From positions 62,001-126,000 of IMG/VR virus record IMGVR_UViG_3300032236_001859: 64,000 bases of DNA. One strand, 5' to 3'. This document shows positions 7,799 to 62,604 of the stretch, piece after piece (positions within the stretch are counted from its first letter, which is position 1; every line of letters begins with the position of its first letter). Both the position numbers and the translations under genes were made by a program. The notes under the pieces are model-generated. The model searched no databases. It was not told the origin of the DNA and worked only from the letters and a program-made list of their open reading frames with translations.

Positions 7799-7843
7799 AA
7801 AAAAAAACCGTGGGAGTCGCTGGCGTACCAGCGACTCCCACGG
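7799..7843 (-). terminator. Intrinsic terminator
   Basis: Perfect 16-bp stem with UACG loop on minus, followed by T9. Confidence 0.85.
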
Positions 7844-8622: not shown

Positions 8623-8625
8623 AGC

Positions 8626-26134: not shown

Positions 26135-26553
26135 ACCGTGGCTTCTTCAGTCTTCGGTGGGATGCCCTCGGGGGCATCGTTGTTGAGTACGAGAGTTTCG
26201 AGTTGGAGATCCCTGCGGGTGCCATCTTCGAGCTCACCCAGGAGTCTCGCAAGGGCATCGGCCCTGGACACCCTGACCACTGCTGCAGTTCTCTTCGCGG
26301 CCTCGAGGAGATGAAGCTGGGGGTAGGCTCCCAAGGGGTAGTCAATTTTGGTGCCTTGTCCAAGCACCGTATAGATCTCCCAGATCTCAGCCTGGATTCC
26401 AGCGGGATCGGGGTCCTTGCTGGAATCCAGCTCAAGTGGGGATGCAAAATCCCCGTTGTTGAGGCCTTGACGTGTGGCCTCCAAGAACTCCCGCCGCTGG
26501 GACATCCAGGCCTCGAAGTCCTTATGGATACCACGAATCTTGGGTTCAGCCAT
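26131..26553 (-). CDS. Hypothetical protein (140 aa)
   Basis: Start MAEPK at 26553 overlaps the sigma gene stop; ATGA overlap downstream. Confidence 0.65.
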   Translation of the reverse strand: MAEPKIRGIHKDFEAWMSQRREFLEATRQGLNNGDFASPLELDSSKDPDPAGIQAEIWEIYTVLGQGTKIDYPLGAYPQLHLLEAAKRTAAVVRVSRADALARLLGELEDGTRRDLQLETLVLNNDAPEGIPPKTEEATV

Positions 26554-27349
26554 GGAAAGCATCCAACCTTTCCTGGATCCTGGTGGCGCGTTGAGACACC
26601 GCACCAGGGGTGAGCTTGAGGCGTTTCGCTATGGCTCCGTTGGTGAGTTTGGGGGCTCCACGGTAACCGGTACGATACGATAGAATTACCTTATCGGTTT
26701 CATCGAGGTCATGATAAGTCGCATCAACCCATTCATCGTAGGGATCCGTGGATGATGTCGCGATCTCTGGGGTATCGTCATCATCATCACCGAGACCATC
26801 TTCGTATGCAGAAGACGAGATCCCCTTGCGCATGAGACCACGAACCTTGGTGATTCGCTTCACCGGGATCCCCGTGATCTCGGCGAGGCGTTCATCGCTG
26901 ACCTCGGTGCCGACGACATCGCCGGCTCGGGAGATCGCATCGATAAGAGCCCGGCTGTCCTTCCGCATGCGCTCCGGCATCGGTAAGGGGTCAGTGATCT
27001 TGGGACCCTCGTGCTGGAGCCTCTGGAGCTGCCGGAACACGTGGGTCTTGAGATCGACACCCACATTGGGGTTAAAGGACTTCACGGCCTCTGCAGCGAT
27101 GAGCCTGGCCCTGTGGGCGACCACGGGAGTCTGTACGGGGGCAAAGCTCGTCAGCGCCTTCTGGATCGTGGGCTGTAGGGTATTGACCACTGCTCTGAGA
27201 TTCTCAGGCCTGGGGTCTCCCTGATAAGCCGTGAAGCTCTCATTCCATGTATTTTTAGACGAAGTTGTCGGGGAACCCTTCGGGCTCTGGGGTAACGACT
27301 GTGACGGTTCCAGTCCCTTTTGCGGCGCCTTTGGGGGCTGTGCCGACAC
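26546..27349 (-). CDS. Sigma-70 family RNA polymerase sigma factor (FliA/SigF-like); start uncertain (27349 GTG, 27505 or 27538 ATG)
   Basis: Region 2 AEAVKSFNPNVGVDLKTHV, region 3 GTEVSDERLAEITG, region 4 HTH LTNGAIAKRLKLTPGAVSQ. Confidence 0.8.
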   Translation of the reverse strand: MSAQPPKAPQKGLEPSQSLPQSPKGSPTTSSKNTWNESFTAYQGDPRPENLRAVVNTLQPTIQKALTSFAPVQTPVVAHRARLIAAEAVKSFNPNVGVDLKTHVFRQLQRLQHEGPKITDPLPMPERMRKDSRALIDAISRAGDVVGTEVSDERLAEITGIPVKRITKVRGLMRKGISSSAYEDGLGDDDDDTPEIATSSTDPYDEWVDATYHDLDETDKVILSYRTGYRGAPKLTNGAIAKRLKLTPGAVSQRATRIQERLDAFHG

Positions 27350-29030
27350 TGATGAAGTTTGAACTGTATTTCGGCTTGGTTGGAGTTGATGCGATTGTGG
27401 TTGTTGGAGTGCTGGTTCCCCCGGCGACGGGGTGCTCGTCGAGTCGGCGTCCTGCGTAGGCTTCGGCCCATAGCGGATGCTGAAAGGTGATGCTTCTTTG
27501 GCCATCACTAGATCGAGTAAATCTAGTGGCCTCGACATCGGCGGCCTGATGTTGTTTCGACCTGACATACATGACCTCCAGTTGGGTACCCGCCTGCTTT
27601 GCAGCTGCATCGAGAATTAGCGTAATGCCTTCGACTGCCCCGTACATCGAGGTGCCCTCGTCGATTGGGGTACCTGCAATAGTTGGGTAAACCAACCGGA
27701 CGGGGGTACATAAACCGATATCCATCCGCAAAGGGCAGTCCACTGCAAGAAGACGTCCGACATAGGTCTGTCTTAGTGCGAGTTCTCTGGCGTATGGGTC
27801 CCCGTAAAAACGAAGGTCCCCGTCGGTGACACGCCCTATCAAGGGGCTCTTGAGCCATGCAGGGGCTGGGAGAGTCGTAAACAGCCCAACGGAGTTTCCG
27901 TTGGGGTCAATGGTATTCTTAGCCTGGATAACCCCTTTTCGGCGGAATCCACCGAGAATACTTACCGCCGAGGTATCCGCCCCGGCTTCACCAACCTGCC
28001 CATTGGGGTTATCAATAAACACGAGTCCAGCTACCACAGATGTGCTCTGCGTTACCCAGCTTGCTCTGATGATCGTGGATGGCCAAAGTGGTTTATGTAA
28101 ATCTGTGGGTGCGAATGGTGTGTACGGTACCACTCCTATCCCAGCGCCATGCTCAATTATTGAGAAAAAGAAGTCGTCTGCCAAGGCCTGTGACTTTGAT
28201 AGCATGCTTTGCTGCACAAGGTCTTTGTGGAACTCTGCGCTTAAATAGCCGTGAACGACTTCAGCCATGGTCTCGTTAAAAATACCACCTTTTAGACTGC
28301 CCTGTATCAGATCTAATGCGTTTTTCGCCGCAACTGTCCCAGGCACTGCCAAATAACTTTGAGCGGCCTCGGCAGCTGCGTCATTCCCCCCGTCTGCGAG
28401 AAAACGTACATACGCGTTCTGCAGCCCAAACTTATCCTGGGCCTGGTGATTCAATACAAATGAAAACGCGTCTGTTATACCTGCCCAGAAATCACGTTGG
28501 AATATCTCAAAATCAATAGACCCTTCATACGAGTTATTGGTTGTTTCCACTAACTCGTCTGTCCGCAGGTACGCGGACGTAGTGTTTGAAAAATGAAGGG
28601 CTCCCGTGGCCAGGTATAGTAAGCGTGAAACGATCACAACTCGTAAGTTGAACTTACCGTTGGCGAGATCACTGGGGCCTCCATCATCGACTACCCCAGT
28701 TATGAGATCATGGTCCCCTGCTTTTAGCAGGAGGTCAGATGACCCCTTGGGTCCGCGCAGTGAATAAACATCTGAATCGAAACGAATGACTACTGTTGCC
28801 GGGGTTCCCTTGACGAACACAAAGTCCGCTGGGATTGCCTTGGTGCCCTTTGGGTTTCTCGCATTAACGCCTACTGCGAGGTCAACCACCGCCTTGGTCT
28901 CAATACGTGAGTATCGAACCACTATTTTCACAGCAGCGTATGACTTACCATCAATCGTCACCCATGCTGAGAATGACGTGGGTACAGTCGGGAGATTCCC
29001 CTGCCGCATGTACTGGGTTAGGTCGGTCAC
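27255..29030 (-). CDS. Baseplate hub-like tail protein (591 aa)
   Basis: Position between tape measure and wedge genes; beta-rich ends of gpD/gp27 type. Confidence 0.55.
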   Translation of the reverse strand: MTDLTQYMRQGNLPTVPTSFSAWVTIDGKSYAAVKIVVRYSRIETKAVVDLAVGVNARNPKGTKAIPADFVFVKGTPATVVIRFDSDVYSLRGPKGSSDLLLKAGDHDLITGVVDDGGPSDLANGKFNLRVVIVSRLLYLATGALHFSNTTSAYLRTDELVETTNNSYEGSIDFEIFQRDFWAGITDAFSFVLNHQAQDKFGLQNAYVRFLADGGNDAAAEAAQSYLAVPGTVAAKNALDLIQGSLKGGIFNETMAEVVHGYLSAEFHKDLVQQSMLSKSQALADDFFFSIIEHGAGIGVVPYTPFAPTDLHKPLWPSTIIRASWVTQSTSVVAGLVFIDNPNGQVGEAGADTSAVSILGGFRRKGVIQAKNTIDPNGNSVGLFTTLPAPAWLKSPLIGRVTDGDLRFYGDPYARELALRQTYVGRLLAVDCPLRMDIGLCTPVRLVYPTIAGTPIDEGTSMYGAVEGITLILDAAAKQAGTQLEVMYVRSKQHQAADVEATRFTRSSDGQRSITFQHPLWAEAYAGRRLDEHPVAGGTSTPTTTIASTPTKPKYSSNFISVGTAPKGAAKGTGTVTVVTPEPEGFPDNFV

Positions 29031-43882: not shown

Positions 43883-46800
43883 TCAGGATCCCGATATGCA
43901 GCCTGAATGCCAGTAACCAACGGCGTCTTCATACCTTCGGCCCCATTGATCCCATGGGGGTCCGTACTTACGCCACTGCATGATATCTGGAATCGTAAAT
44001 GTACCGATATCGACTGTTTGTCCGGCACTGATGACCGCCGACGGTGTCCCGACTATAGACGCTATTGCGTAAACATTGTATTGCTCGCCATAGTCGAGAG
44101 AAATTAAAGCGGATGCGTTTATTGGTGGACCTCTATCCTCTGGCCTAAAACATGATGCAATTGTGGTCATCCACCCCGCTGAAACATTGCATTTCGCCTG
44201 AACCTGATGACAGACCTGGACACCACCCTGTGTTAAGTTCCTTATGTAGTTACCTGAGCTTGGGGTACCCCCATCTGCGATTAACCACTGCCAGGCCCCA
44301 CATAGTGCTGGATAACTCCCGGCCTCGGAATCGCAGAAATGATTAGTGATTAGATGATGCCCGGATCCATCCACCCCATTTTCTATTCCCAGGGTGATCA
44401 TGGATACCACTGACGGATTCGGGATAACGCTGAATACATCTGAATAAGTCCCGTAAGTCGACCATTGTATGGGCGGTGCCGTGATTATGAAGCCTTGTGA
44501 GCGACCCCATGCACCTTCTAACCCACCCTCCCCGCTAGAAGACATCGAAGACGCGTAGTCCATTAAGGGGAACGATAGCACTACTGGGGTGTCACCTACA
44601 TCGGCGGTACCCGAGGATTCGTTACACAGGTATGGATTTTGAACCCCAAAGAAACTAAGTGTCCAGTTTGCTTTACGCAGTCTTCCCTTGTAATTACATC
44701 CTCTCAAGGCGATTTGAACACGTGCAGGACCATAGTTTTGTAGGTACTCTCTTCTGCCACCTGAACCGTTGTTGGGTCCCATATACGTATTGTCGAGTGC
44801 TGTAAATGTAAAACCAACATTATTCCTGTCCCGACGAATAGTGTCCATGAAGTATGACGGGGGTTCTGGGACCTCGAGGCGATCACACGTGAACATGGGA
44901 TGTCCGGGGTTTATATCGCACTTAATCACTTCATTGAGAGGGACATACTTTTTCACAAGTGTCAGCCGACTAATATACCCCTGACAATTACAATCCTGCT
45001 TGGTGTCGTCATAGTTGACCTGCTGCACGCTTCTGAGGCAGTTTACGACTTGGCCTTGAGTGAGTAAGTCGGCACACCCAGTACCGGAGCCCGCAGCCCC
45101 TGGGCATCTGTACAACTCGGGTCCACAACACGACACATCGATATGACCGGCGGATACCCCAAAAGTACCCCACCTGCCTGAGTAATAATTTCCATCTCCT
45201 TCATTATAGTAACCATAGAAATACCCAATGAACATCTTGGAGTCTTCCTCAACCTTCTCCCACGTGGAGTCATCGTCATCGGAGAGATACCAGGTATCGC
45301 TCTGAAACACATAAACGTGTTGACTACAGTAATCAAACTCACAGTCACAGGTAAGGGGCTCCTCGGAACCCCCTGCGCAGGGCGCACCGCGGACAAACAG
45401 TCTGGCAATGCTCGAGGATCCATTTGACCAGAGTTCAACTTCTTCGGGGTTGTATTCATACCCCCCAACACAAATCGAGGATGCCACGACTTCAGCGGCA
45501 TCTGTGCAATCTGTCTCAATGATGCCATCTACGGTAACACTGGTCGGAGTGATATCCACTGCGGAGTGTGTATGACTCTCACAATCCGCACAGGTATCCG
45601 CTGGTGGCGCGCATGTTGCCCCAGTGGGGCCTCGTGGGCCAGTATCACCTGCTCGGGAGTCAGCGCCAGGCGTACCCTGTTGACCGTCTATCCCCTTGGG
45701 GCCTTCGGCGCCTGGATATACATTTCCAGGGGCACCACGGGGACCAATGGGTCCCCTGTTACCATAACTTCCAGGTGGGCCCTGTGGACCCGGATCACCA
45801 TCGGGGCCCTGTAGACCCGTGGGCCCCATGGGGCCATTGATATTTCCACCAGCGGGGCCCACGGGACCCGCGGGACCACGCGGTCCCACTGGACCCGGAA
45901 CACCCTTGTCCCCGGTTTCTCCGATTTCACCGTCGGGGCCCTGGACTCCAGTGGGTCCAAGCAGTCCAAGGGGTCCGGCGTCGCCTTGAGGACCAATACC
46001 ACCGGCTACACCTGCGGGCCCTTTTTCACCTTGTGGACCCGGGATTCCCTGGACGCCTCGGGGTCCCTTGGGACCATCGAGTCCAGGGGCTCCTGGCTTC
46101 CCGGCTAAACCGGGGTCTCCTTTGATTCCACGTACCCCAGGTAAACCTTCGGGCCCCGTGGCACCCTGGGGTCCGATAACCCCTGTAATTCCCTGTGGTC
46201 CCGTTGCGGCTACACCAGTGGGGCCCTGTTCACCCTGGGGGCCCTGGACGCCTTGTTGCTGGGGTCCTTGGGGACCCTGGGGTCCCGTGGTACCTTGAAT
46301 ACCAGTGATGCCATGTGGTCCCGTGAACCCCCGGGGCCCCGTGGCCCCCGCGGCTCCTGGAGTCGTCCCCGGGATGCCCTGGGGACCCTGTGGACCCTGG
46401 GGTGCCCAGGCCTGAGATGACCACGTGGAAAGTGCAGTGCGTGTATAAACAACGGCGACATCAACGGCAAGATAGGTGTACCCCGTGGGTACACTGCCCG
46501 CAGATGGTCGCCCAGAAAGATTACCAACTCCGTTCAGAGCCTTGGTTCCATCGACACCACGGGGTCCCATGACCCCAGTGGCCCCCGCTGGGCTGATACC
46601 AGTGGGACCCTGGATGCCACGTGGCCCCGGTACTCCGACTGGCCCCTGCAGACCCGTGTAACCCAGAGGACCGCTTGCACCCAGTACACCCTGGACCCCA
46701 GGGGCTCCCTGGAGTCCTTGAGGTCCCGCTATACCCTGCGGCCCGGTATCACCAGGGAATCCCTGTAAACCCAGGGGGCCCTGTGGACCCGCGAGGCCTG

Positions 46801-47479
46801 GTCCAGTGATGCCCTGTGGACCCCTTGGGCCACTCAGGCCTTGTGGACCCGTGGCCCCAACGCCGATCTCAGTCCAATCCGCAATAGTATTGGTTCTCGT
46901 GTTTGCCGTGCATAACCACAACGAGAAGTTTCCGGCGTCCTCAATCCAGCGGTCACCCTGAGAATACTCTCTGGCGAGAACCCAACTCCGTGGGCATCTC
47001 CATTCCTTGAATGGGGCAGACAGCGACAGCGGACTCGGGTATATCTTTGCTGCGATTACCCATGAGTGCACGAACCAAATGAAGAGCTCATTGAGGTCGG
47101 TGTCATACCATCTAAAACCGGTGTCAGATCTACTCAAAGAAATCGCGAGTCGTTGTGTTGTCGGCCCAAACTGGACCTGGAGCTCGGAGATATGCCCAGC
47201 GGTGACCACGAGCCCCACGAGTTCCTGGGCAGCGTGGAGAACCGCTGTGGTGCCCTGGAGACCACGTGCTAACCCATGCAGGAATCTTCCAGATATCGAA
47301 GAGTATCCGATGACTTCACTGGGTTCCCCTACGAAACCAGTACCAACGGCGACGACGCCCCCATTGGGGTCGAGTCGCGTGGTATCCATGACTTCAACGT
47401 AGGAATCGGGACCCTCGGCATCAGCGAGAAGCACGGTGGCCAGTCGAGTAATCGTGTTGTTTTGAATTGGCAGAGCCAT
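43883..47479 (-). CDS. Collagen-like fibre with Cys-rich tip (1198 aa)
   Basis: Shared LPIQNN base domain, long GXY runs, HTH sequence motif (His-Thr-His), Cys/Tyr/Trp-rich C-terminus. Confidence 0.85.
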
Positions 47480-48514
47480 TCAGTACCCCAATAGAGTCTT
47501 GGTGTCACCGCAGGTCTCAACTAGAGTAGGCCCAGCAGACCTGCCGGCAACTATGAGCGACCCCGCACGCAAAATAGTAGTATCGAGGACTTGAGTGAGT
47601 GTTGTCACCGCTTTGACATGAACGGGTGATAATGTATCGCCGGCGTGGTCGTGATTACATGGGGGCTGCGCCGGCCACGTCGAGGGATCACAGGGCCCCG
47701 TAGGTCCAGTGGGGCCCTGGGGTCCCGGGATGACTCTGCCAGGGTTCCCTGGGGATCCCATGTCTCCAGTGGGCCCCTGGGGGCCTACTGGACCGATGCC
47801 GCCATCATAACCTTGAGGCCCCTGGATGCCACGACCACCCGGAGGTCCCTGGGTTCCAGCTGGACCCAGGGGTCCCTTGTTGCCCTGTGGGCCCTGAGGG
47901 CCTTGTGGCCCCGTAGAAGTTTTCCCTGTGGGCCCACGTGGTCCCTGGATTCCGCGTGGACCAGTGGGACCAACTCCAGTGGTACCTCTTGGACCCCGTG
48001 CACCCTTGGCTCCCCTGGGACCACGATCACCTTGATGCCCGCGTGGGCCCTGCTCACCCTGAGGACCCGGGATTCCGTTTGGACCCGGGTCGCCCTGGGG
48101 ACCCCATGGGCCCTGAACTCCCTGGGGTCCAATGTCGCCAGGAGGCCCCTGTAAACCGTCGCGTCCACGGTTGCCGTCTTTTCCTGGATCCCCGACATCG
48201 CCTTGGGGTCCCTGGACACCCTGTCGAAGCGGACCAGTGGGCCCCTGCGGACCCTGGATACCGCGTGGTCCCGTGACCCCATTAAATCCAGGTATCCCGG
48301 TTATACCTTGAATACCAGTGATCCCCTGGGGGCCCGTAGACCCCGTGATCCCCTGAGGGCCCCGTGGACCCTGGATACCCTGGGGACCCCCTGGACCAGA
48401 TAGACCCCGGGGCCCCTGACCGCCGACGACACCACGTGGTCCCGCGGGGCCTTGTGGCCCCTGAGGACCCGCGACGCCTTTACCAGGAAGAGGGCCTAAC
48501 CAGAGATCAGCCAT
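47480..48514 (-). CDS. Short collagen-like fibre (344 aa)
   Basis: About 260 aa of GXY repeats, then CNHDH and a short beta domain. Confidence 0.85.
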
Positions 48515-48547: not shown

Positions 48548-51500
48548 TCATGCAATGAGATCCCATTCGATCACTGTGGACTCCCAATTCGTATTATCCC
48601 CTGTACCACGTGCAGTGTTATCCGATTTCAAACACAGGTAGTGATCTGTCCCCGCCGCGATCTTTGCAGCCGGAGCAAGTGCCGCGATGGAAGCCCCAGT
48701 GGATACTAGGGACCCATCTGCTTTACGCCCAAACGTCACGAGTCTGCCGCATGCGATCTCAACAATCCCTGTCCAGGCCCCGACGTTGCATTGCCCCTGT
48801 GCATTGGATCCCGTGGCCACAACGGTGCCATCAGATTTAAGGCCTACAGAGTGCTGATACCCCGCTGCGATAGCGGTAACTCCGGTCCAGCCCGAGACGT
48901 TACACTGCCCCGATGAGTTCAACCCAGTGGCGACGACAGTGTTATTTGATTTAAGGCCCAGTGTAAAGAAACCAGTATAACTCGCTGCGATCGATATGAG
49001 TGTTGTCCAGGACCCAATGTTGAGCTGCCCATTACCATTGGACCCCACACCAATAGCGGTGCCGTCTGCTTTACGACCCACTGAGAAATTGGGCCCACTG
49101 GATACCTGAGCAATGGTGGTCCAGCTACTGACATTACATTGCCCCGATGTATTCAACCCCGTGGCAACGACACCTCCCGTGGACAGTCTTCCCAGGGTGG
49201 TCTGCTCGCCACACGCGATCTGGGTGACACCTGTCCAGGCCCCTACATTACATTGACCGACATCATTATTGCCCTTGGCTACAACAGTGCCGTCTGAACG
49301 TAGAGCCACTGTGTTCCTGTAACCACCATCGATATCAATCAGGCTATGCCACCCCGCATTGAACTCGAGCTCGCCATAATAGCTGTACCCACCAAAGGCG
49401 TAGACAAGTGTCCCATCTGATTTGACACCGACGACGTCATAGAGGCCTACTGAAATCGCGACGATACCCGTCCACCCCGAGACGTTTAGCATTCCTCTGC
49501 CATTGTCCCCAACGGCGACAACGGTGCCGTCACCTTTCAAACCAACAGTGCAATACCTCCCACATTTAACAGCTACCATTCCGGTCCAGGTCGAAACATC
49601 GGTTTCACCATAGAATGATGAACCCGTGGCGCGTGCTGTACCATCTGCGAGAATAGCAACTAAGTGGTGGTCCGCGAGATCGAAATCTACGACATCCACA
49701 AACGCTGAGATATCAAGCATCGCACCTGGTTGGTAGTAACTGGAGTCTGCACCAGTAGTTGCCAATAAGGTTCCATTTGATTTCAGGGCGACCACGCACA
49801 TCTGCTTGGCATGAATCTTGGTGATCCCTGAAAACGGAAAAATCGAGATCTGGCCATCAGTGTTGTTACCCACGGCGACAACGGTGCCATCTGGTTTGAG
49901 ACCAATTGTATGCGTGGGTCCACAGGCCACCGCGGAGATCCCGGTCCAGGAAGACACATTGGTTTGCCCATCTGTGTTTTGCCCAGTCGCCAAAACGGTG
50001 CCGTCTGACCTCAAGCCCACGGAGTGGTTTCGACCACAAGCCACGGATACCACATCCGCCCAAGGGATAAAAGCTCGAAGACCAATATCATTCGTGCTCA
50101 CCCCAACAACGGAGCCATCTGCTCGGCGTCCTACGAGGTGGTATGGCCCCGCATGTATCTCAACAATCCCTGTCCAAGAATTAGCGGCGTATAGGGGGTT
50201 GCCTGGATCCGATGGAGTCACCACTACGGTGCCGTCGGCACGCAATCCCGCCGCGAAGTAGTACCCGGCCGCGATGGCCGTTATCCCTGACCACGTGTAC
50301 ACTGCATTATAGACTTCAGAGTACCAGGTGTCTCCTGCGTACCAGACATATCCATCGTAAGTGAGCGCTAGAGAAAAATCTGCTCCTGCGGCTATGGCAA
50401 CAATTCCATAATTCCAATAAAAATTAAGCTGACCCGAGTAGTTATTGCCCACTCCACGTACGGTGCCGTAATAATCTAGTGCTAGGGTGTGGTAAGGCCC
50501 CATGGCGATGGCGTCAATGTTGGACCACGGGTACTGGTACCCATAGTAGTCGTCAAAAAGGTTCAATTGGCCAGAATCATTGTTACCTGCGGTGACCACG
50601 TTGCCGTAGTCACCATATATCCCTATGGTGGATTGCTCAGCACAATAAATCTTTCTGACATCCGCCCATAAAGAGACTTCGCACTGTCCATAGTTATTCA
50701 GACCCGCGGCATGCCCGACCCCGGAAACGATACCGACAACGTGCCCGTTACCGCTTGCGATTGGCCACACACCTGGGCCCCACGTCGGTATCGCAGTGAG
50801 CTGCCCATAGGCATTACTGCCCAGGGTGTGATAATTACCGAGGTCATCTGTCGCGATTACATTCTCATAACCACATGCGATATGAAACTGAGATATCGAA
50901 GTCCACCCTGCGGTGCTAGTTTGTCCATACGAGTTATCCCCTGTACTCACCACGGTTCCGTCTGTTTTAACTCCAAGACTGTGTTGGTCCCCACACGCGA
51001 TATCAGTGATGCCACTCCACCCCGAAACCGTGATCTGATTATTGACATTACTCCCCGCCCCGACGACGGTGCCATCTGATAGCAGCCCCAATGAGTGGGC
51101 ACCACCACCGCTAACCTTGGTTACCCCAGCCCAGGATGAGATATCGATCTGCCCCGATGTATTCAGCCCAGTGGCCACCACGGTATGATCTGCGAGAAGC
51201 CCTAAGGTGTGGTTATAGCCACATGCAACCTGAATAAGTGTCAGCCATGATGTCACCGCGCATTCACCATTTGTGTTGTACCCAGTACCCACCGCGGTGC
51301 CATCTGCCTTGAGACCGATGGTGAACTCAAGCCCGCATGCGAGCTGGGAGATATTTGACCACCCCGTGGTGTTCAGTTGTCCGTTGACATTTCTGCCCTT
51401 GGTGGCCACGGTACCATCATCTTTGACACCAACTGTGCTCTGGTTACCCGCGGCGATCTGATTCACGAGTAACCACCCCGCCAGGTTTCGTTTTCCCTGC

Positions 51501-52864
51501 CCAGAATCCCCTGCACTTACCAGGGTTCCATCGGCACGTAATCCAACTGAAAGCGCGTACCCAGCGGAAACCGCGATGATCTCAGACCACGTGGAAACAT
51601 TACATTCCCCGTAAGCATTGTAGCCCACTGCAATGGCGGTGCCATCTGTCTTCAAACCTAGGACATGGATGCCATTAGAGGATATACCTTTGATTCCTGT
51701 CCACGCCGCACAGCCGGCTTCACCATAATTGTTGTTACCTGCATATAGAACACCGCCGCTGGGGGTCACCGCTGCGGTGTTCTGTTGATTACCGTTCGCT
51801 GAAATCTTGGCGTCATAACTGACGGTTGCTGATGACCGGAACCAGACCTGATCAACGGCGATATCCCACCACATGAACCCAACTGGCTGTGAATCATAAT
51901 TGGAACGAGGGCCATCCAATGAGGTCGCACTGGCCGTGGTGCCCCCACGTGGCCCCACTGGTCCTTGCGCCCCCTGGGGGCCCGTGTGCCCTGCGATTCC
52001 AGGGATACCTTGTTGCCCCGGTGTTGTTCCCGTGGGACCCCGGGTGCCCCGAGGGCCCTGACCACCACGTGGACCCATCGGACCCAGTGGTCCCGTGATT
52101 CCCAGTGGTCCCGTGATTCCCTGGGCACCCATGGCTCCCTGGTCCCCACGAATCCCACGTGGACCCACTGCGCCCTGTGGACCCTGGAGTCCAGTTAGCG
52201 GGGCGACACCCTGGATACCACGTGGGCCTGGTTCGCCGGTTGGGCCAGGGGCACCTGTGGCACCTGAGACGGGTACCCAGTCTGCCAGAGTACGCGTTCT
52301 CGGAGAAACCACGCATCGCAGGAGTTCATTGGTATCCGTGTTTACCCAGCGGTCACCACCATTGTAATCAGCGTTAGTCAGTATCTCGGTGACACCACCG
52401 ATGAACTCCTGAACAGCGACCCCAGTTCCTGCAACACGGTCCAATAAGGGGACTACCCAATCGGAACCAGTCCACTCATAGAACTCGTTGTCATAGGTAT
52501 CGAACCAGGTCTTCCCGACATCCTGTGCAGTCAGGGTTTCCCCAAGAAGCAGTCTTGCAATGGTGTCACCCTCACCGACTTGAAGCTCCGTGATGTGCGC
52601 TGCTAAAACGCTGAGACCACAGTAAGCTCCGACTGGGTGCAAGATAATAGGGGTGCCCATGATTCCACGCGCAGATAACATCAGTGCGTGGTCCGTTTTA
52701 GAACTGTAACGTGCGATCTCGGTGATACCCGGGTTCGATGTCGCGATGACGACGACTCCCTGAGATGGGAACTCCGTGGTATCTGCGAGATGCGCGATGG
52801 TATCCCCGGTGTCGAGCACAGAGGTCAACTTGGTGAGCGCATTGTTGGATACAGGTAGCGGCAT
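48548..52864 (-). CDS. Collagen-stalk fibre with RCC1/BLIP-II beta-propeller repeats (1438 aa)
   Basis: About 28 repeats of W-x-x-I-x-x-I-A-x-G-x-x-H-x-x-G-L-K-x-D-G-T-V-V-A-x-G-x-N-x-x-G-Q. Confidence 0.9.
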   Translation of the reverse strand: MPLPVSNNALTKLTSVLDTGDTIAHLADTTEFPSQGVVVIATSNPGITEIARYSSKTDHALMLSARGIMGTPIILHPVGAYCGLSVLAAHITELQVGEGDTIARLLLGETLTAQDVGKTWFDTYDNEFYEWTGSDWVVPLLDRVAGTGVAVQEFIGGVTEILTNADYNGGDRWVNTDTNELLRCVVSPRTRTLADWVPVSGATGAPGPTGEPGPRGIQGVAPLTGLQGPQGAVGPRGIRGDQGAMGAQGITGPLGITGPLGPMGPRGGQGPRGTRGPTGTTPGQQGIPGIAGHTGPQGAQGPVGPRGGTTASATSLDGPRSNYDSQPVGFMWWDIAVDQVWFRSSATVSYDAKISANGNQQNTAAVTPSGGVLYAGNNNYGEAGCAAWTGIKGISSNGIHVLGLKTDGTAIAVGYNAYGECNVSTWSEIIAVSAGYALSVGLRADGTLVSAGDSGQGKRNLAGWLLVNQIAAGNQSTVGVKDDGTVATKGRNVNGQLNTTGWSNISQLACGLEFTIGLKADGTAVGTGYNTNGECAVTSWLTLIQVACGYNHTLGLLADHTVVATGLNTSGQIDISSWAGVTKVSGGGAHSLGLLSDGTVVGAGSNVNNQITVSGWSGITDIACGDQHSLGVKTDGTVVSTGDNSYGQTSTAGWTSISQFHIACGYENVIATDDLGNYHTLGSNAYGQLTAIPTWGPGVWPIASGNGHVVGIVSGVGHAAGLNNYGQCEVSLWADVRKIYCAEQSTIGIYGDYGNVVTAGNNDSGQLNLFDDYYGYQYPWSNIDAIAMGPYHTLALDYYGTVRGVGNNYSGQLNFYWNYGIVAIAAGADFSLALTYDGYVWYAGDTWYSEVYNAVYTWSGITAIAAGYYFAAGLRADGTVVVTPSDPGNPLYAANSWTGIVEIHAGPYHLVGRRADGSVVGVSTNDIGLRAFIPWADVVSVACGRNHSVGLRSDGTVLATGQNTDGQTNVSSWTGISAVACGPTHTIGLKPDGTVVAVGNNTDGQISIFPFSGITKIHAKQMCVVALKSNGTLLATTGADSSYYQPGAMLDISAFVDVVDFDLADHHLVAILADGTARATGSSFYGETDVSTWTGMVAVKCGRYCTVGLKGDGTVVAVGDNGRGMLNVSGWTGIVAISVGLYDVVGVKSDGTLVYAFGGYSYYGELEFNAGWHSLIDIDGGYRNTVALRSDGTVVAKGNNDVGQCNVGAWTGVTQIACGEQTTLGRLSTGGVVATGLNTSGQCNVSSWTTIAQVSSGPNFSVGRKADGTAIGVGSNGNGQLNIGSWTTLISIAASYTGFFTLGLKSNNTVVATGLNSSGQCNVSGWTGVTAIAAGYQHSVGLKSDGTVVATGSNAQGQCNVGAWTGIVEIACGRLVTFGRKADGSLVSTGASIAALAPAAKIAAGTDHYLCLKSDNTARGTGDNTNWESTVIEWDLIA

Positions 52865-52884
52865 GTTCTATCCAGAGGTGTGAG

Positions 52885-55800
52885 TTAATTCTCGGTGACG
52901 TCTGAACCAAGTAGGGGGTTACCGGGGAGTCCAGCCCCTGGGGTCTTGGTATAAAACTTGCAGTCAGGTAAATGTCTTTCGAGAACCCAAGTAGTTACCT
53001 TACCGCTGATCACAATCACCAATGTAGCAAGGCAGTCGTTGGTGGCATCAAATGTTAGACTAGCGCGAAGAACCTTCCCACCACCTGCTAATCCCTCACA
53101 AGTGAGATCAAAAGATCCTGCTTCCAGTGTCCACTTCCTGGGATCTGCGGTCTGTATCAACCTCAGATTGAGTCCACAGTCCCCTATAGAAGGGATGTTT
53201 GTGATCGTGAATCCAAAGTTGATTTCCGTACCCGGCATATCGCACCCACACTGCTCATACGGCGTACTGGACCCACTGGAGTGATGCGATGAACCACTGG
53301 AATGATGTGATGATCCGCTGGAGTGATGTGAACCACTGGAGTGATGCGACGACCCACTGGGGAGGTGCGAACCGCTGGAGTGATGGGAACTCGCATGACT
53401 CGACCCATGCCCAGACGACTTGCCAGACGGTGGTGGTTTCCCACTGGATCCCATGTGACTCGACGTGTGGCCAGACTTGTGCCCAGACGATCTGCCAGAT
53501 GGCTGATGTTGCCCACTGGAGGTATGGCTGTGCGGCTGACTATGTGGATGGCTGTAGGGGTGGCTACCACAGCATCGGAGGTAGTCGAACCCTGGAGGTG
53601 GATTTGTGTTGGGGTCCGGTGGCATCCCGGCCGCAGGTGACACCTCGCGCATCGTGAAGAGGTCACAGTCAAACTGAGTGCAGGGATCCACTACCACTGA
53701 CTTGATGTAAACGAAACGACATGGATCCGGGTCGAGAACTGGATAGAAGACTATATCGTTGACATGAACACCTTCCCCGCCGCTGTGGTCGCAGACCACG
53801 CAGGTACCAACACAACGTATTCTACCACCGGTGTCGTTGAACACCGCTGTCCCCACAACCTGGATTTCAGCACCGGGGTACCACCCATCGGGGACATCCC
53901 TAAATGGACCGGCCCATACCACTCTATCCGTGAGATCCCATGCCATGGTGTCACAGTTGAACGTGAACTCGCTGATTACGAGCTCCTTCATGAGCTCGCA
54001 GTTGCATTCACATGGATGGCTGTAGGGGTGACTGTATGGGTGACTGTGCTTCCCGCTGGAGTGGTGTGACGACCCCGAGTGCTTGGCGGAGTGATGTGAT
54101 GACCCCGAGTGTCTCCCACTGGAATGATGCGATGACCCCGAGTGATGTGCGGACCCCGAATGATGCGAAGACCCTGAGTGCTTGGCAGAGTGATGCGATG
54201 AACCCGAATGATGTGATGAGCCCGAGTGTTTCCCACTGGAATGATGCGATGAACCCGAGTGGTGTGACGAACCCGAGTGGTGTGACGAACCCGAATGATG
54301 TGACGAACCCGAATGATGTGACGAACCCGAATGATGCGATGATCCCGAATGATGCGATGATCCCGAATGATGCGATGATCCCGAATGATGTGACGAGCCC
54401 GAATGATGCGATGACCCCGAATGATGCGATGACCCCGAATGATGCGATGACCCCGAGTGGTGTGACGACCCCGAATGGTGTGACGACCCCGAATGGTGGG
54501 ATGACCCACTGGAACCACTGGAACCACTGGAACCACTGGAACCACTGGAACCACTGGAACCACTGGAACCACTGGAACCACTGCTGCCGCTGGACCCACT
54601 GGACCCACTGCTACCATTGGACCCACTGGACCCACTGCTACCATTGGACCCACTGCTACCACTGGACCCACTGGAACCACCACCACTGCTGGCTCCACTT
54701 TGTGTGGGGCACTCGGTGACTTCACAATCACATGCTGGTCTGGGATCGCATTGTTTAAGAACCCCGATGCACTTGAACCCAGTAGCAACGCAGGCCTTGA
54801 TGACATCCGGGCACCAACCCACCCCACCAACATCGAGCGCATTCGTCGAACACAGCACTGTATCCATCGTGGAGGTGCAATAGTTTTGTGCAATGATTCC
54901 TGCCGGAGAAATCACGTCACCGCCATCTTTGGGATCCCCTCTACCGAGAACCCCATCACAAACACAGTTACTTACACAGTGTTGATGAGGTTGGCATGCC
55001 GGTTTACCCTGGGAATCACCGAAATCGCCCTGGGGGCCGCGCGGACCCGTGGGACCATCTGGCCCAACGGGGACTTCAGCATCGGGTCCTGCGGGGCCCT
55101 GCGGACCCCTTTCACCTTGAGGACCATCTAACCCGGGGACTCCATCGTATCCCCGTGGTCCCGCTGGACCCTGTACGGTTCCCGCGGGGCCCTGCGGACC
55201 CTGGGGCCCGATATCTCCGGCTTCTCCCTTTAGCCCAGGGATGCCTTGCGGACCCGTGCTACCATCTGGGGGGCCGTCGTAATCACTGCCACGTGGACCA
55301 ATGGGTCCCGTGTGACCACGTGGTCCAGTAACAGATATTCCAGTTAAACCTTTATCACCGGGTTCACCCTGATCACCAGTGGCACCCTGGGGTCCCACTG
55401 GACCCGGGTCGCCTCGAGGCCCCTTGATCACGGCTCCCATGGGTCCGCGGTCACCCCGGGGCCCCTGTGGACCCGGGAGTCCCTGTGGACCCTGTGGCCC
55501 CTGGATGCCGGGGTTGCCTGGTAGCCCGTCTACACCAGGGGCGCCTTGTTGACCCTTGATGCCCTGGGGACCCTGTGGCCCTGGAGTAGTCTGCGCTGGC
55601 CCCTTGGGCCCCATGTAGCCCTGGGGTCCAGTGGGGCCGATCCCAGTGCTCCCCTGTGGACCCGTCGGACCCTGGGGGCCTGGATCTCCTGGGGGACCCA
55701 CTGGCCCCTCGACTCCGGTGTTTCCAGCGATGCCCTGAGTGCCTTGAGGCCCCACGGCACCATCGACACCACGTGGTCCCGTGTACCCCCGTGGACCCTG

Positions 55801-56787
55801 GGCACCCTGGATCCCTTGGATTCCACGGTCGCCTTGACGTGCGGTGAATCCTGATCCCGTGGCACCCTGGGGACCAGTGATACCTTGGGTACCCCGGGTT
55901 CCCGTGGCACCACGTACACCTGGGATGCCTTGCGGTCCCGTTAAACCCTGGGATCCATCGGGGCCCTGATAGCCCTGTGGACCACTGGGTCCACGCGGAC
56001 CACTGGGACCCAATGCAGTTGGTGTGGCGCCAATTGGACCCTGGACACCAGTGGGTCCAATGTCACCCGTTGGTCCACGGGGTCCTCTGGGACCCGTGGC
56101 CCCTGGGGTCCCCGGACCCTGGTCTCCTCGTGGACCCGTGGGGCCCAGAGGACCCCGTGGACCCGTGGCCCCCACAAGAATAGGCGACCAATCGGAGAGC
56201 TGGCCGGAAGGTGTGTGATCGCAGATGTATAACAAGTTGGTGTCGGTATCTAACCAGCGATCACCAAATGAATATGGAAGGACTACGATGTCCTCTGCAG
56301 GCGCAATGAAATCCTTGATACCGCGACTTGGTCCGGTGAGGCCGCCCCCATGGGTGAGTACGGCCGCATTGAACTTGAAGCCATCCCATCGCGTGAAGAC
56401 ATCGCCAGGAGTATCCAAGTAGATGTAACCACGCTCACGTAAACTCAGGGTCAGCGCGGCGCGCTGCTCTGGGGTCATCTCGTGAATCCGGAGTTCCTGG
56501 ATGTGCTCTGCGGTGATCGTGGACCATATCTTGGTACCAGTATCCCATGCCTTGGGAGTTGTACCCCCGAACCCACGACCATTAAGGGGGAGCAGTTCAA
56601 CGAAGAGGAGTCCCGCGCCAACATTCTTGTTTGATAGCCGGATGAGCTCAACACCAGTGGATCGAGACCCCAGAGCAACAATGATCGGGGTCTCGATCTT
56701 GGAGGCATCGCTGACTTCAATCACTGTACCCGAGACCCCAAGTGGGGCCGTAAGGGTAACAACGGCATTGTTCTGAATCGGTAGCAC
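52885..56787 (-). CDS. Collagen-like fibre with GSS and SGSSHH repeats and Cys-rich domains (1300 aa)
   Basis: Base domain, GXY runs, then (GSS)n and (SGSSHH)n. Confidence 0.85.
54012..54690 (-). repeat. Coding tandem repeats: 18-bp (SGSSHH) and 9-bp (GSS)
   Basis: Units such as GAATGATGCGATGACCCC and CCACTGGAA, read directly. Confidence 0.9.
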
Positions 56788-56798
56788 AGGTGCCCCTA

Positions 56799-57119
56799 CT
56801 AGATCATGGTTGCCACGAGAATCTTGGTTTTCCTGACATCGTCGACATACCCACGCATCACGATTTTATTGCGGTAGGTATCCCCAGTGGCAATAACGCG
56901 GAACCGGATTATGGCTTGCGTGAACCCAATAATGGGGTCGACAACATTGGCCAGGGAGAACACGAAGAGCCCGGGGTCAAGTGGGCACTCCACGGCCTGA
57001 TTGTCGGAGACCGCGACTTCTGTCATGGTCTCCAGATTGATGATCAGGACCTCCACGGGTCCTAGACCCGTGGGGAGTTCTGCGGCAACAATGGGTGTTT
57101 CACGATCAGAGTAGCGCAT
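56799..57119 (-). CDS. Hypothetical virion-associated protein (106 aa)
   Basis: Fills the gap in the operon; [10 protein letters not shown] resembles NKLVFGGGED of 61609-62604. Confidence 0.7.
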
Positions 57120-57122
57120 GGT

Positions 57123-59834
57123 TTAATCCCATTCGAGGCGACGGGCGCCCATGGTTGTTGAACCGCCACCGTTGACGTTGACCACGAAGGCAAGACGAGA
57201 AGTCGCGTGGCCAGGAGCGTTACCACCAGGGGCGTTGTCCTCGTCGACCACGGTAAGTGCAACTACGGCGTTGCGGCCATTATCGGCCTGTGGATAGGTG
57301 TGCGAGAAGCTGGGACCAGTTCCCGTGTTATCCTGTCTTGCCAGGTTCCACCACGTCGGGAACGCGGGGTCATTGACACCCAGAGGAGGCAACGCGGTCA
57401 TCGATGACCTGAGCTCCCAGGCATAGGAGGCAATGGCAGCAGGGGTACCCCCGGATTCAATTTCGTAGTCGTTGGCGGTACGGAAGTGTTGAACCCCGGC
57501 ACCATAGGTGATGTTCGCACCAATCACTGAGGTATCCAGCCAAACCTTGGTGGGGTTCGTGGTATCGATGTCCACGATGGGGATGACTTTGGTGATCGCC
57601 CCGGCGAGATCGGTGAGGACGAGAACAGCGTGTCCACCAGTGCGGAGCCCACCATTGATGAGATTGGGATCCGTGAATGCAATTGAGGGATGCCCGGCGA
57701 GAATGGTGCCCGCGGAGGCCAGAACGGGGTCGACACCCAGGGGGTCACCTTGGATCCAGGAGACATCAGTACCATAGGAGCGACGCCCATCGAAGACGTA
57801 AGTTTTAGCACTACCCGGAACCGATGCTGGTGAGGGGATAATCGCAGCGGGGTTCAGGTTGTCCACTGCTCCGGTTTGAGTGTAGACCACAGGGGTGGCT
57901 CCAAAGAGTTTCCAGGGCATCCCGATGGTATCTGACCACCCCGATGTCGACTTCACAGTGGCACGGACATCAAGGGCGTCGTTGACGCTCTGTGGCCATT
58001 TCAGTGGCTTCGAGGGGAACCCAATTGCGATGGTATCTGTGGGTTGCACGAGCCCTGGCAGGGGAGAGCCCACGACTAAAACGATTTGATCGTCACTGGG
58101 CACACTTGCGATGGGGTACCAGCCGCGCATGCCACCGTTGACGACAACGAAGAAAGACCCCGGCCAGGCATGAAGACCAATACCGGGTGAATTGATGGTT
58201 ACCCCGGGGCCCACGGCGCTTCCGCCGAGCTGGGCGTATCCAAGCCCCACACTTTCCCATCCGAATCCGCCGGCATTGATCTCCCACTCCCAGCTCGTGT
58301 GGTTACCACCACCGGGTTCATTGGAGATGAAGAACCAGTCAGATGACGTGTAGACCTGGGTGGAACCCGTGACCGCGATGACGATGGAATCCACGGATGC
58401 CGAGGCCACGATTGGATAACTGTGGAGAATTGGAGCGGCGACACCGCCACCTGCGGGGGTCTGGGTAACAATGTTGAGGAACCCACGGATCTCCCCAGCG
58501 GCGAGATCACCGGCTTGGATGCCTCGCCCAATGTTGGTGACGTTAATAGTGAGGTTGCCACCAATGGCAGTGCTGAGATCAATGGTGCCCGTGAATCTCG
58601 AATAGATCTGCCCAGCAGACCAGGGGTCATTGCGAACCGCGACGCGCCCGGTGCCATTGAGGGCGACCACAGAACCCGCGGGGGCGTCCTGGTATCGTGC
58701 GGCGACAACGATGGTGTTGTCTGCACCGGCGAGCACTGGGCTCACCCTGGCGACGTCACGGATCGTATTTGGGGCCGACGATGAAAACACTGGGGATCCC
58801 GAACTCGCGACGAGGTCATTCCAGGATGCCCACTCGCGTGCGGCAAAACTGAATCCAGGTGCACGGTAGGTGGTTCGCAGATAGAACGTCGCCGTTGCAG
58901 TACGTGCCGGGTTGAGCTCCCCGGGAGCCCCGATACCAGCGTCATCCTTGGAGGTCAACTGAACCGGCCACTTATCGATGTGGTTCCAGGTATGGGTTTG
59001 ACTTGGAAACCCAGGGCCAGGGTAAACGACTTCGGTGCCGCCGACCACGGTACCACTGGGTCCGGCGACCAGGGTTCCAAAGGAGTTGCCATAGAGGGAA
59101 CCATTGGAGAAAGCGAAGCGGGTGCCGTCCACTGGGGAGCCATCTGAGGTCTGGACGCCACCACTGGGACGATGAGCACCCGAGATCTGCTCGAAGAGGA
59201 CCTGGGCGAACTCGGAGTAGAACTGCCCTGTGGTGCGGCCGCCTGCGGTGACCCGGTTCTCGTTATCACTGGAACCATTGCCGAGGATCCTGGCAACGGC
59301 ACGTGAGATATCCGTGGGATTCACGGGATCCAAGCTGACCCCGGTGATAATCGCACTGGGGCCCTGATTGAGCTGGAGGTCAATGTTGCCATTGATATCG
59401 CCGACTCCACCGCCATCTGGGGTCGCATTCCAGGCATCCCCGGTCAACGTGAAGAGAACACTGGCGAATTGGTCTGCGGTGGCATAGTTGGCGACTGCAG
59501 AGGCCCCATTGTCATACTTGAGCCCGAGGAGGTGGTCACCCCCGCTACCATCTGTCGGAGACTGGTTTTCATACGCGGAACCCGGGGGATCCACGGGGGT
59601 GACATCACTCTTGCGCCAAAACAAGACCACGAGTTTGTCACCGTTCTGGCAAACCCAGTTGGTGCCCATAAAGTTGTCTTCACTGATCGCAACCTGGTAG
59701 ATACCAGCGTTATCAGTTAAACGAACCACACGTCGCCAACGTGTTACATTTCCTGGACGCGAATAAATCGCGGTGTAATAAACCCCAGGAGTATTGACCC
59801 CTGCAACCTTGACGAAACCTTGGGCGGTGGCCAT
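57123..59834 (-). CDS. Large beta-rich virion protein with PKD-like domain (903 aa)
   Basis: FDGRRSY...IASYAW...FSHTY...LTVVDED; SD AGGAG. Confidence 0.7.
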   Translation of the reverse strand: MATAQGFVKVAGVNTPGVYYTAIYSRPGNVTRWRRVVRLTDNAGIYQVAISEDNFMGTNWVCQNGDKLVVLFWRKSDVTPVDPPGSAYENQSPTDGSGGDHLLGLKYDNGASAVANYATADQFASVLFTLTGDAWNATPDGGGVGDINGNIDLQLNQGPSAIITGVSLDPVNPTDISRAVARILGNGSSDNENRVTAGGRTTGQFYSEFAQVLFEQISGAHRPSGGVQTSDGSPVDGTRFAFSNGSLYGNSFGTLVAGPSGTVVGGTEVVYPGPGFPSQTHTWNHIDKWPVQLTSKDDAGIGAPGELNPARTATATFYLRTTYRAPGFSFAAREWASWNDLVASSGSPVFSSSAPNTIRDVARVSPVLAGADNTIVVAARYQDAPAGSVVALNGTGRVAVRNDPWSAGQIYSRFTGTIDLSTAIGGNLTINVTNIGRGIQAGDLAAGEIRGFLNIVTQTPAGGGVAAPILHSYPIVASASVDSIVIAVTGSTQVYTSSDWFFISNEPGGGNHTSWEWEINAGGFGWESVGLGYAQLGGSAVGPGVTINSPGIGLHAWPGSFFVVVNGGMRGWYPIASVPSDDQIVLVVGSPLPGLVQPTDTIAIGFPSKPLKWPQSVNDALDVRATVKSTSGWSDTIGMPWKLFGATPVVYTQTGAVDNLNPAAIIPSPASVPGSAKTYVFDGRRSYGTDVSWIQGDPLGVDPVLASAGTILAGHPSIAFTDPNLINGGLRTGGHAVLVLTDLAGAITKVIPIVDIDTTNPTKVWLDTSVIGANITYGAGVQHFRTANDYEIESGGTPAAIASYAWELRSSMTALPPLGVNDPAFPTWWNLARQDNTGTGPSFSHTYPQADNGRNAVVALTVVDEDNAPGGNAPGHATSRLAFVVNVNGGGSTTMGARRLEWD

Positions 59835-61608: not shown

Positions 61609-62604
61609 TCAGACGTCGTTCTCACGGAAGAGGAATTGATGGGTGCTGATATACGAGGCACCCTTCCAGGTCACCGACACCTTAACAGTGTAGTTGGTCT
61701 CGAAGACGAGATCACTGGCACCTGTTTTGACAATCTTGAAGATACCGCGGGCATCGGCCCCAGTGATCCAGACCTCGGCGCCAGCGCTGTGAGCAGCACG
61801 TGTGGTCCCCAGAGAGGCTCGGGTTACGGTGACTAAAGTGGGGGAGTCCACGGTAACCACGGTCATGAGTTCGCTGTCGCACGCCAAGATCTTGCCGGCG
61901 GTGAGCCCAGTTGTGGATGCAATGCTGAGCTGGACAGCACCTGCACCGCTGCCCAGTGGGGCGCTGAGAAGTTGGGAGTACAGTGGGGTATCGGTGCCCA
62001 CAAAGATCGGGGAGACCCCATCGACTTCATAGAGTTCAACAGTGGCGTGATGCAAGAACTTGTCGGTGATCGCGGCGCCGTTGACTTGAAGCGAGGGGTA
62101 AAAGCCGATGAGATCGTTGGCGGGCACCCCAGTATCCGTGTACTCGAAACCAAGGAGACACATGGACACCGTACTGGAGCCCAGGCGATTGTAGATCTGG
62201 GTGAGGTCGCGGTGGTCATCCCCGGTGATCGCATCGATTTGGTCTTCGCCACCACCGAAGACAAGTTTGTTGAGATCCCTGTTCTCCGCATTGGCGTCGT
62301 CGTAGATCTCGACGAGCATGGCGTGTTCTTCATAGGGAGGGAACTTGACGGCAAAGGTACCCGCACCATTGGCACTCTCGTAGGCCGAGGCGACATCGAT
62401 GCTGTAACAACGCAGGAGGACTTCAGGGGTGCAGACATCGTAACCCGTGATATCCAGGGCCTCACCGGTGAGCCCCCCAGGAATCAGTTTAAGGAGACGT
62501 GCACGCACGGTGCCCACGGGGGCACTGGGGAGGACGCCAACACAGGGGTGCCCAGCATTCAGGGTACCCGCGGTGACATTGTTCACAAAGGATGGATATT
62601 TCAC
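61609..62604 (-). CDS. Virion-associated protein with fibre-base module
   Basis: ELMTV...VTRASLGTTRAAHSAGAEV; GTG start after GGAG. Confidence 0.7.
   Translation of the reverse strand: MKYPSFVNNVTAGTLNAGHPCVGVLPSAPVGTVRARLLKLIPGGLTGEALDITGYDVCTPEVLLRCYSIDVASAYESANGAGTFAVKFPPYEEHAMLVEIYDDANAENRDLNKLVFGGGEDQIDAITGDDHRDLTQIYNRLGSSTVSMCLLGFEYTDTGVPANDLIGFYPSLQVNGAAITDKFLHHATVELYEVDGVSPIFVGTDTPLYSQLLSAPLGSGAGAVQLSIASTTGLTAGKILACDSELMTVVTVDSPTLVTVTRASLGTTRAAHSAGAEVWITGADARGIFKIVKTGASDLVFETNYTVKVSVTWKGASYISTHQFLFRENDV

Follow-up and report, generated by a model that had tools for sequence, protein, structure and literature searches.

Histidine-bearing serine/glycine repeat tracts in a collagen-like fibre protein of an uncultivated jumbo phage

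A 64,000-nucleotide stretch of viral DNA (bases 62001-126000 of IMG/VR virus record IMGVR_UViG_3300032236_001859, hereafter the window) encodes a 1300-residue collagen-like fibre protein (P0001) in which two long tracts of serine, glycine and histidine separate cysteine-rich domains. The first tract comprises 229 residues (a Gly/Ser linker, 15 exact SGSSHH units, variant units and SHPY repeats) and the second 101, giving 330 residues in total with 74 histidines per chain. Why build so much histidine into a linker? We tentatively propose that the tracts form a non-globular tether within a trimeric fibre and that the histidines make this tether switchable by metal or pH, a reading that we rate at slightly below even chances. 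A first-pass annotation, made from the DNA letters, had described these tracts as natural poly-His-tag-like sequence in a virion fibre; its observation stands, whereas its interpretation holds only in part, in that the anatomy, the selection on the peptide, the fibre nature and the rarity were upheld and the likeness to a His-tag was not. Judged by its sequence, the protein belongs to an already known kind, the collagen-like phage fibre with low-complexity linkers, and what appears new is an undescribed His-rich type with a putative function.

Results

Both tracts lie in a single open reading frame (ORF; 52885-56787, GTG start, stop codon at 52885-52887) on the minus strand, as do all features of the fibre gene given below. 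Tract 1 opens with a 63-residue (GSS/GSN)n linker (aa 697-759, 54511-54699), the last eight units of which are identical in DNA (GGT TCC AGT). It continues with the 15 exact consecutive SGSSHH units (aa 760-849, 54241-54510) and with 64 residues of variant units (aa 850-913, 54049-54240), where SGSSHH stands among [20 protein letters not shown] / [15 protein letters not shown] and SSGRH, and it closes with SHPY repeats ([11 protein letters not shown]; aa 914-925, 54013-54048). The variant units that follow the 15 exact copies are the older part of the array, and the homogeneous N-terminal part is young. Behind a cysteine-rich domain, tract 2 (aa 1074-1174, 53266-53568) begins with SHPY/SQPH-type units and ends with SSGSSHH-type units. 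The order given in the first-pass annotation, from linker through repeats, variants, SHPY and Cys domain to second tract, thus proved accurate in every particular.

The composition of the tracts sets them apart from the rest of the protein. Histidine makes up 52 of 229 residues (23%) in tract 1 and 22 of 101 (22%) in tract 2, compared with about 1% elsewhere in the fibre, and serine accounts for about 47% of the tracts. The 330 residues include no V, I, F, W, C, D or E, and only one Leu, one Met and three Tyr; with almost no hydrophobic residues, the tracts cannot form a hydrophobic core. No other His-rich tract is present among the ORFs of the 216-kb genome. The histidines occur as 27 HH pairs and never in runs longer than two, as opposed to the six or more consecutive residues of a poly-His tag, and the HH pair itself is not conserved, being replaced by SGSSHLP units in an ortholog and SGSSQP units in a third relative; the comparison with a His-tag was overstated on both counts.

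The DNA of the array records both its growth and its constraint. Tandem Repeats Finder reports a period of 18 with 21.9 copies and a period of 9 with 19.4 copies, and a back-translated three-unit pattern matches the window 13 times, with none expected from shuffles. The 15 exact units fall into nine DNA variants arranged blockwise, with the glycine codon, for example, being GGG in six, GGC in one, GGA in three and GGT in five. All 11 variant states among these units are synonymous and none is nonsynonymous, although only 14 of the 54 possible single-base changes in the unit (26%) would be synonymous (P ~4e-7, or ~2e-5 on a conservative count of eight events). Variation that is synonymous only, and blockwise, is consistent with purifying selection on the peptide together with duplication of units by slippage, which agrees with what the first-pass annotation had proposed. 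The same synonymous-only pattern is seen in the ortholog's heptads and in its (GS)31 linker.

Three relatives of the fibre were found (L127; L125 and L128 from one metagenome; and L007). L127, a 217,040-bp JGI contig, carries a full ortholog of 1303 residues (6440-10351) that is 76% identical to P0001. L125 (13054-15789) and L128 (3-1412) are two contigs of another metagenome, each ending inside the array, and their flanks show no mismatch to L127 in 2070 and 1290 nt; they hold at least 16 heptads versus 14 in L127, which is either a real length polymorphism or assembly collapse. The L007 contig also ends in the array. The fibre start is the same in L127, L125 and L007, and the architecture is the same in all relatives, with every domain and nearly every cysteine kept and identities to the ortholog ranging by domain from 67% to 89%.

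Against this stable background the repeat units themselves turn over. The window has a (GSS)n linker followed by (SGSSHH)15, L127 has (GS)31 followed by (SGSSQQP)2 and then (SGSSHLP)14, and L007 has (GS)n followed by SGSSQP units. Tract lengths in the window and L127 are nevertheless close and at the same positions (229 versus 236 and 101 versus 95 residues), with no Asp or Glu in the tracts of either; the histidine content is 23% and 22% in the window and 11% and 18% in L127, the last figure being 17 His in 95 residues. The ortholog also keeps the SGKH punctuation towards the C-terminus of tract 1, the S-x-P-Y/H repeats adjoining Cys motifs, and the way in which tract 2 ends with SSGSHH-type sequence. 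On these sequences, the conserved features are tract position, length, S/G-richness, the lack of Asp/Glu and an appreciable histidine content (11-23%), and the dense HH pattern is a lineage-specific elaboration.

Such turnover is what would be expected if the tracts were an inert entropic spacer, in which only length and a hydrophilic, uncharged S/G character are selected and histidine is a passenger of whichever unit was amplified (CAT CAT here; CAC TTA CCC or CAA CCC in relatives). Relatives 76% identical have exchanged the unit completely and kept tract length, which is consistent with this account, as are the (GSS)n or (GS)n linkers and the homogenisation of the arrays by amplification, which has left at least seven SGSSQP units with identical DNA in L007 and 11 of the 14 heptads with identical DNA in L127. 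It does not readily explain why each of the two full orthologs shows enrichment of histidine in its two tracts (11-23% versus a background of about 1-2%), why older, degenerate units and tract 2 keep histidine while other positions change, or why none of the 11 variant states is nonsynonymous even in the codons for His, in which two of the three possible changes at the third position alter the residue. We consider an inert spacer rather unlikely.

Could the array instead be mis-assembled, or a repeat that is not translated? Contigs of L125/L128 and L007 and an independent Logan assembly (run X1) break inside the array, otherwise identical assemblies differ in heptad number, and JGI gene calling split the ortholog, all of which would fit an artefact. 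We hold this to be extremely improbable: the reading frame is uninterrupted over 3.9 kb and links conserved domains at either end, in the window as in the independent 217-kb contig, and exclusively synonymous variation is unlike assembly errors. Flanks and block junctions are, moreover, reproduced exactly, with X1 contigs matching both flanks without mismatch (52000-54310 and 54626-57500), short X1 unitigs matching block junctions, and an exact 169-nt piece (53191-53359) present in the viral metagenome of a second study (X2). The longest exactly periodic stretch in the array is 78 nt, so that reads of 100-150 nt could resolve it, and the copy number of 15, which is taken from the assembled sequence, is plausible.

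What surrounds the tracts points to a fibre. Upstream of them lies a 385-residue Gly-X-Y region (aa 206-590, 55018-56172) that matches the collagen family PF01391 in six stretches (E 3.6e-46, 155 bits versus a cut-off of 27.2), implying a putative trimeric stalk of about 110 nm (estimated at 0.286 nm per residue). Four PHROG tail-fibre families (6320, 5073, 819 and 8745) match at E 1e-50 to 1e-72, through the collagen region only. The N-terminal domain (aa 1-205, 56173-56787) is 89% identical to the ortholog and is probably a virion-attachment module. The gene sits among the virion structural genes of a tailed phage, with a large terminase (TerL; phrog_675, 1e-44), a baseplate J protein (PF04865, 7e-18), a neighbouring ORF with tail-protein matches (61609-62604) and paralogous fibres in the window, where most large structural ORFs are without Pfam or PHROG match. 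A single in-frame ORF with a strong collagen match in a phage structural block supports the fibre reading, and the protein identified in the first-pass annotation as a virion fibre does appear to be a phage protein of fibre type.

Three cysteine-rich modules, with many CxC and CC motifs, follow the collagen region and are separated by the two tracts. Domain 1 (aa 591-696, 54700-55017) has 13 Cys, starts with C-Q-P-H-Q-H-C and closes with C-D-C-E-V-T-E-C; domain 2 (148 aa, aa 926-1073, 53569-54012) has 12 Cys, starts with C-E-C-N-C, ends with C-C and is an orphan fold, 78% identical in the ortholog, which has lost none of its Cys; and domain 3 (126 aa, aa 1175-1300, 52888-53265), with 6 Cys and a distal position, is probably the distal tip. 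Neither domains 1-3 nor the N-terminal domain has a match in Pfam, PHROG, PDB or the Atlas. Comparison of the three relatives of the fibre singles out C[QA]PHQHC as the most conserved pattern, which contains the single isolated HxH of domain 1 (aa 601-603, 54976-54996). A His-x-His beside cysteine directly after the collagen region recurs in three collagen-like proteins of the window (54976-54996, 45566-45592 and 47645-47659, all on the minus strand), the motif sequences being [16 protein letters not shown] and C-N-H-D-H; these motifs may act as trimeric knots, held by metal or disulfides, and fix the register of the triple helix. HxH trimers coordinate Fe in T4 gp37 (PMC11705849; Bartual et al. 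2010 cited there), and this precedent, together with HxH and Cys motifs after the collagen region in three proteins, suggests His-metal chemistry in these fibres.

One extension of that chemistry to the tracts would be an ordered, metal-stapled trimeric rod, in which histidines from three chains coordinate a column of metal ions, repeat by repeat, as an extended version of the gp37 HxH iron sites (precedent in PMC11705849). The collagen stalk would make the chains parallel and trimeric, so that each unit would supply six ligands, two His from each of three chains; purifying selection acts on the 15 units, whose period is exact, and HxH motifs occur elsewhere in the same fibres. The repeated motif is, however, HH rather than HxH, hydrophobic or beta-forming residues are lacking, the ortholog has a period of seven with one His per unit while another relative has none in its first units, and no homology to gp37-type domains was found in Pfam, PHROG, GenBank phages or the PDB. 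We think such a rod improbable. Less probable still, to the point that we give it little room, is metal piggy-backing (the 'Ferrojan horse'), in which the tract would carry Fe or another metal and the fibre would be recognised by a metal-uptake receptor of the host. Its appeal lies solely in the analogy with the gp37 HxH hypothesis (PMC11705849) and in the high His content; the tracts, though, are internal and do not form the tip, receptor binding would fall more readily to the distal orphan domains 2 and 3, and the orthologs differ twofold in His content.

Structure prediction gave low scores throughout. An AlphaFold2 model of aa 590-1300, built on a 3-sequence alignment, has a mean pLDDT of 35 and a pTM of 0.21, with domains and tracts equally low; domain 3 is beta-rich in it, at a pLDDT of only about 50. 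A complex prediction with three copies of aa 755-860 and four Zn scored 0.00, which speaks neither for nor against metal binding.

Searches for similar sequence returned little beyond the relatives described above. The window has no DNA or protein match, near or distant, to fibres of 50,697 GenBank phage records. A search of 1.84 billion protein representatives gave 4798 matches, the best 150 of which were examined, so that weaker domain-specific matches may lie beyond; within these 150 the only true relative was P0002, the ortholog's own 116-residue C-terminal fragment, and the other 149 were compositional matches to Gly/Ser repeats, ten of which were fully inspected and contain no His tracts of the fibre type. 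In IMG/VR, the S-G-S-S-H-H x3 pattern gave no genuine match and one off-frame artefact, and a looser DNA pattern, (HHxxxx)x5, was discarded after hitting at least 117 loci that were off-frame readings of other repeats or His runs of giant viruses. Scans of JGI metagenomes with patterns from domains 1 and 2 produced no further relatives, and an ESM Atlas feature search with domains 2 and 3 no usable match. A word-based protein search with aa 926-1300 returned no match that passed, its candidate list probably being swamped by low-complexity words, and a literature search on histidine-rich phage fibres found nothing relevant. The claim that no described phage fibre resembles this one, and the search for similar tracts that the first-pass annotation had called for, therefore came out the same way: nothing alike in GenBank phages, in IMG/VR or among the best 150 of the 4798 matches. 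For scale, the largest low-complexity region in a survey of 102 phage proteomes was 115 residues long (PMC6821194), and tract 1 is twice that length.

Among 185,579 prokaryotic genomes, the three-unit SGSSHH pattern matched once, in an Acutalibacteraceae metagenome-assembled genome (GTDB contig JAZLLB010000090.1, L132:3-1352, plus strand). The match is an unrelated membrane protein with at least six in-frame SGSSHH units at the 5' end of an open frame truncated where the retrieved stretch starts, the array being followed by a Ser-rich and acidic stretch and then a transmembrane segment; it looks like convergent evolution of the array.

In the L127 contig, gene calling had yielded only the 116-residue C-terminal fragment of the ortholog (gene at 6440-10351) plus wrong-strand ORFs. 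This gene defeats both assembly, two IMG/VR contigs (L125 and L007) ending inside the array, and gene calling. The ortholog is accordingly present in protein databases only as fragments, and such proteins are under-represented there. Long ORFs in other frames or on the other strand also run across the arrays in the window (53988-54893, minus; 54012-54719, plus; 53184-53672, minus), one of them a 235-residue His/Trp-rich reading, and these could be mis-annotated. We rejected them as genes: they are by-products of the repeat, no conserved sequence borders them, and only the main frame connects the conserved domains. Equally rejected was a conserved collagen-like helix for the linker of tract 1, which is formally Gly-X-Y and was the only part to find matches in a PDB sequence search (collagens and engineered GS linkers), because the orthologs carry (GS)n or (GS)31 there.

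The source record is 216,043 bp long with direct terminal repeats and a GC content of 57%, and represents an uncultivated jumbo tailed phage; no tRNA or tmRNA genes were found in the whole 216-kb genome. Three collagen fibre genes lie side by side on the minus strand (43883-47479, 48548-52864 and 52885-56787), with a 344-residue pure collagen protein between the neighbouring fibres. They are paralogs with one docking module and differing distal parts: the N-terminal 200-330 residues are common to all three, aa 2-322/337 of P0001 being 40% identical to the 1438-residue neighbour (48548-52864) and 36% identical to the 1198-residue neighbour (43883-47479). Beyond this shared N-terminal domain of about 200 residues, the distal parts of the three adjacent fibres are unrelated to one another. 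This arrangement suggests fibres that may be interchangeable on, or co-mounted at, a single docking site.

The 1438-residue fibre combines a short collagen region with at least 17 RCC1 repeats (PF13540, 1e-129; RCC1-like beta-propeller PF25390, 5e-67), an array unusually large for a phage fibre. The third fibre has 994 residues in L127 as against 1198 in the window. Also within the structural block is a 354-residue ORF (26546-27610, minus strand) with a weak match to an RNA polymerase sigma factor family (phrog_351, 1.5e-8).

Outside the window, the genome encodes a 579-residue protein with GT2 glycosyltransferase and Capsule_synth domains (G000:C1:193185-194924, minus strand; L133:103-1842), the target of which could be the virion, DNA or the host surface. 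An enzyme of this kind makes it conceivable that the tracts are a glycosylated serine brush, O-glycosylated on Ser by a phage or host enzyme to give a mucin-like coat or glycan adhesin in which histidine is secondary. Serine is abundant in the tracts, and Ser/Thr-rich low-complexity regions are associated with polysaccharide-related proteins (PMC6821194). Nothing ties the GT2 enzyme to the fibre, from which it lies about 78 kb away, and a serine brush would leave the His enrichment unexplained; we accord it a low probability. Phage glycosyltransferases of the GT2/Capsule_synth kind commonly modify DNA or host surface glycans.

Discussion

How might a fibre of this design work? We envisage a homotrimeric virion fibre in which an N-terminal docking domain and a collagen stalk would be followed by the three Cys-rich modules, strung like beads, with the two S/G/H tracts as the string that would determine how far the distal modules reach and how freely they move. 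Between trimeric beads, three parallel chains would form a loose tether, and standard per-residue rises put the contour length of tract 1 at an estimated 80 nm or so, beside the stalk of about 110 nm. Replication slippage of the 18-nt and 9-nt units, or unequal recombination between them, would create and remodel the arrays, with selection keeping length and composition. About 222 imidazoles per trimer would be available for chelating Zn, Ni, Cu or Fe, either between strands or to outside surfaces. The computed charge of the tracts, assuming a His pKa of 6.5, is about +16 per chain at pH 7.5, +65 at pH 6 and +81 at pH 5. Around neutral pH the tether would be near neutral and could chelate metal; below about pH 6.5 it would turn into a strong polycation and adhere to anionic envelopes, exopolymers or minerals.

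Several points weigh against a tether switched by its histidines. We infer trimer formation, disorder, presence in the virion and the response to metal or pH from the sequence, the location in the virion being drawn only from gene context and collagen-based PHROG matches, and the AlphaFold2 model is uninformative on order versus disorder. The HH pair is not conserved, the ortholog having one His per heptad and the third relative none in its first seven units; given this turnover of the unit, a role specific to histidine may be weak or confined to particular lineages. Typical metal-binding His regions of prokaryotes are rich in Asp/Glu, of which the fibre tracts have none.

If the switchable tether is correct, the tracts could amount to a new kind of phage adsorption device: a tether of about 330 residues, with about 220 His per trimer, whose reach, stiffness or stickiness would be switched by ambient metal ions or mild acidity. 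The virion would first be reversibly anchored to metal-bearing or anionic surfaces, such as cell envelope polymers, exopolymer or mineral coatings; the distal Cys-rich modules would then engage a specific receptor, and the density of histidine would be retuned between lineages (HH, HLP, QP) by slippage. We regard this fuller proposal as doubtful.

The known metal chemistry of phage fibres so far consists of a few structured HxH sites, which are the basis of the contested proposal that trace metals are carried or exploited by phages. A flexible tether that exposes hundreds of histidines to solvent would, if real, be a much larger and more accessible sink for metal or protons, and would offer a simple, testable case of environment-dependent adsorption. 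The locus further illustrates, in a clean natural case, how repeat turnover rewrites the chemistry of a linker while selection holds its length and charge. On the practical side, a natural module of GS linker plus histidines is directly expressible, and might permit capture of such virions by immobilised metal affinity chromatography.

Comparison with known systems brings out both the familiar and the unusual elements of the design. Among phage proteins, fibres of the T4 gp37 type would be alike in being trimeric, with histidines from three chains that could coordinate metal, and in the HxH with Cys that follows the collagen region of this and two neighbouring proteins. In contrast to gp37, which has few HxH in a folded, interwoven beta needle, this fibre has about 27 HH pairs in 330 S/G-rich residues; its tracts carry HH rather than HxH and lack beta-forming and hydrophobic residues, and no sequence or profile similarity to gp37/gp12-type domains was found outside the collagen region in Pfam, PHROG, PDB or GenBank phages. 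Collagen-type tail fibres of phages (PHROGs 6320, 5073, 819 and 8745) share the Gly-X-Y stalk and the place in a structural module, whereas the N-terminal domain, Cys modules and S/G/H tracts are without counterpart in the 50,697 GenBank phage records.

Other His-enriched low-complexity sequences resemble the tracts in little more than composition. The His-rich low-complexity regions of bacterial and archaeal proteomes that are tied to Ni/Co binding average 36 residues with 53% His and 32% Asp/Glu (PMC6821194), whereas the fibre tracts are 101-229 residues long, have 22% His in a Ser/Gly matrix and contain no acidic residues; they are neither dominated by histidine nor furnished with Asp/Glu co-ligands. 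The Plasmodium histidine-rich protein family (PF05403, with HRPII) gives a weak compositional match below threshold (E 4.9e-4, 20.4 bits versus a cut-off of 45.8). Engineered (GS)n or (GGS)n linkers with His-tags are closer in design, since (GSS)20, or (GS)31 in the ortholog, is followed by His-bearing repeats and the linker finds PDB matches among them; the sequence described here is natural, however, is embedded between conserved domains in three independent metagenomes, and has a longest His run of two instead of at least six.

The closest working analogy, without homology, is to the preCols of the mussel byssus, in which a collagen domain is joined to end domains with about 20 mol% His that reversibly bind Zn, Cu and Ni and tune the mechanics (PMC6477608). 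Whereas preCols belong to an animal extracellular matrix, with terminal His domains of 20-100 residues that cross-link neighbouring molecules, the fibre tracts are internal, 101-229 residues long, built of tandem repeats and, on our reading, part of a virus particle. The two share a collagen helix combined with non-collagenous stretches of about 20 mol% His, which in the fibre amount to 22%, with 52 of 229 and 22 of 101 residues being histidine in the same polypeptide as the 385-residue collagen region.

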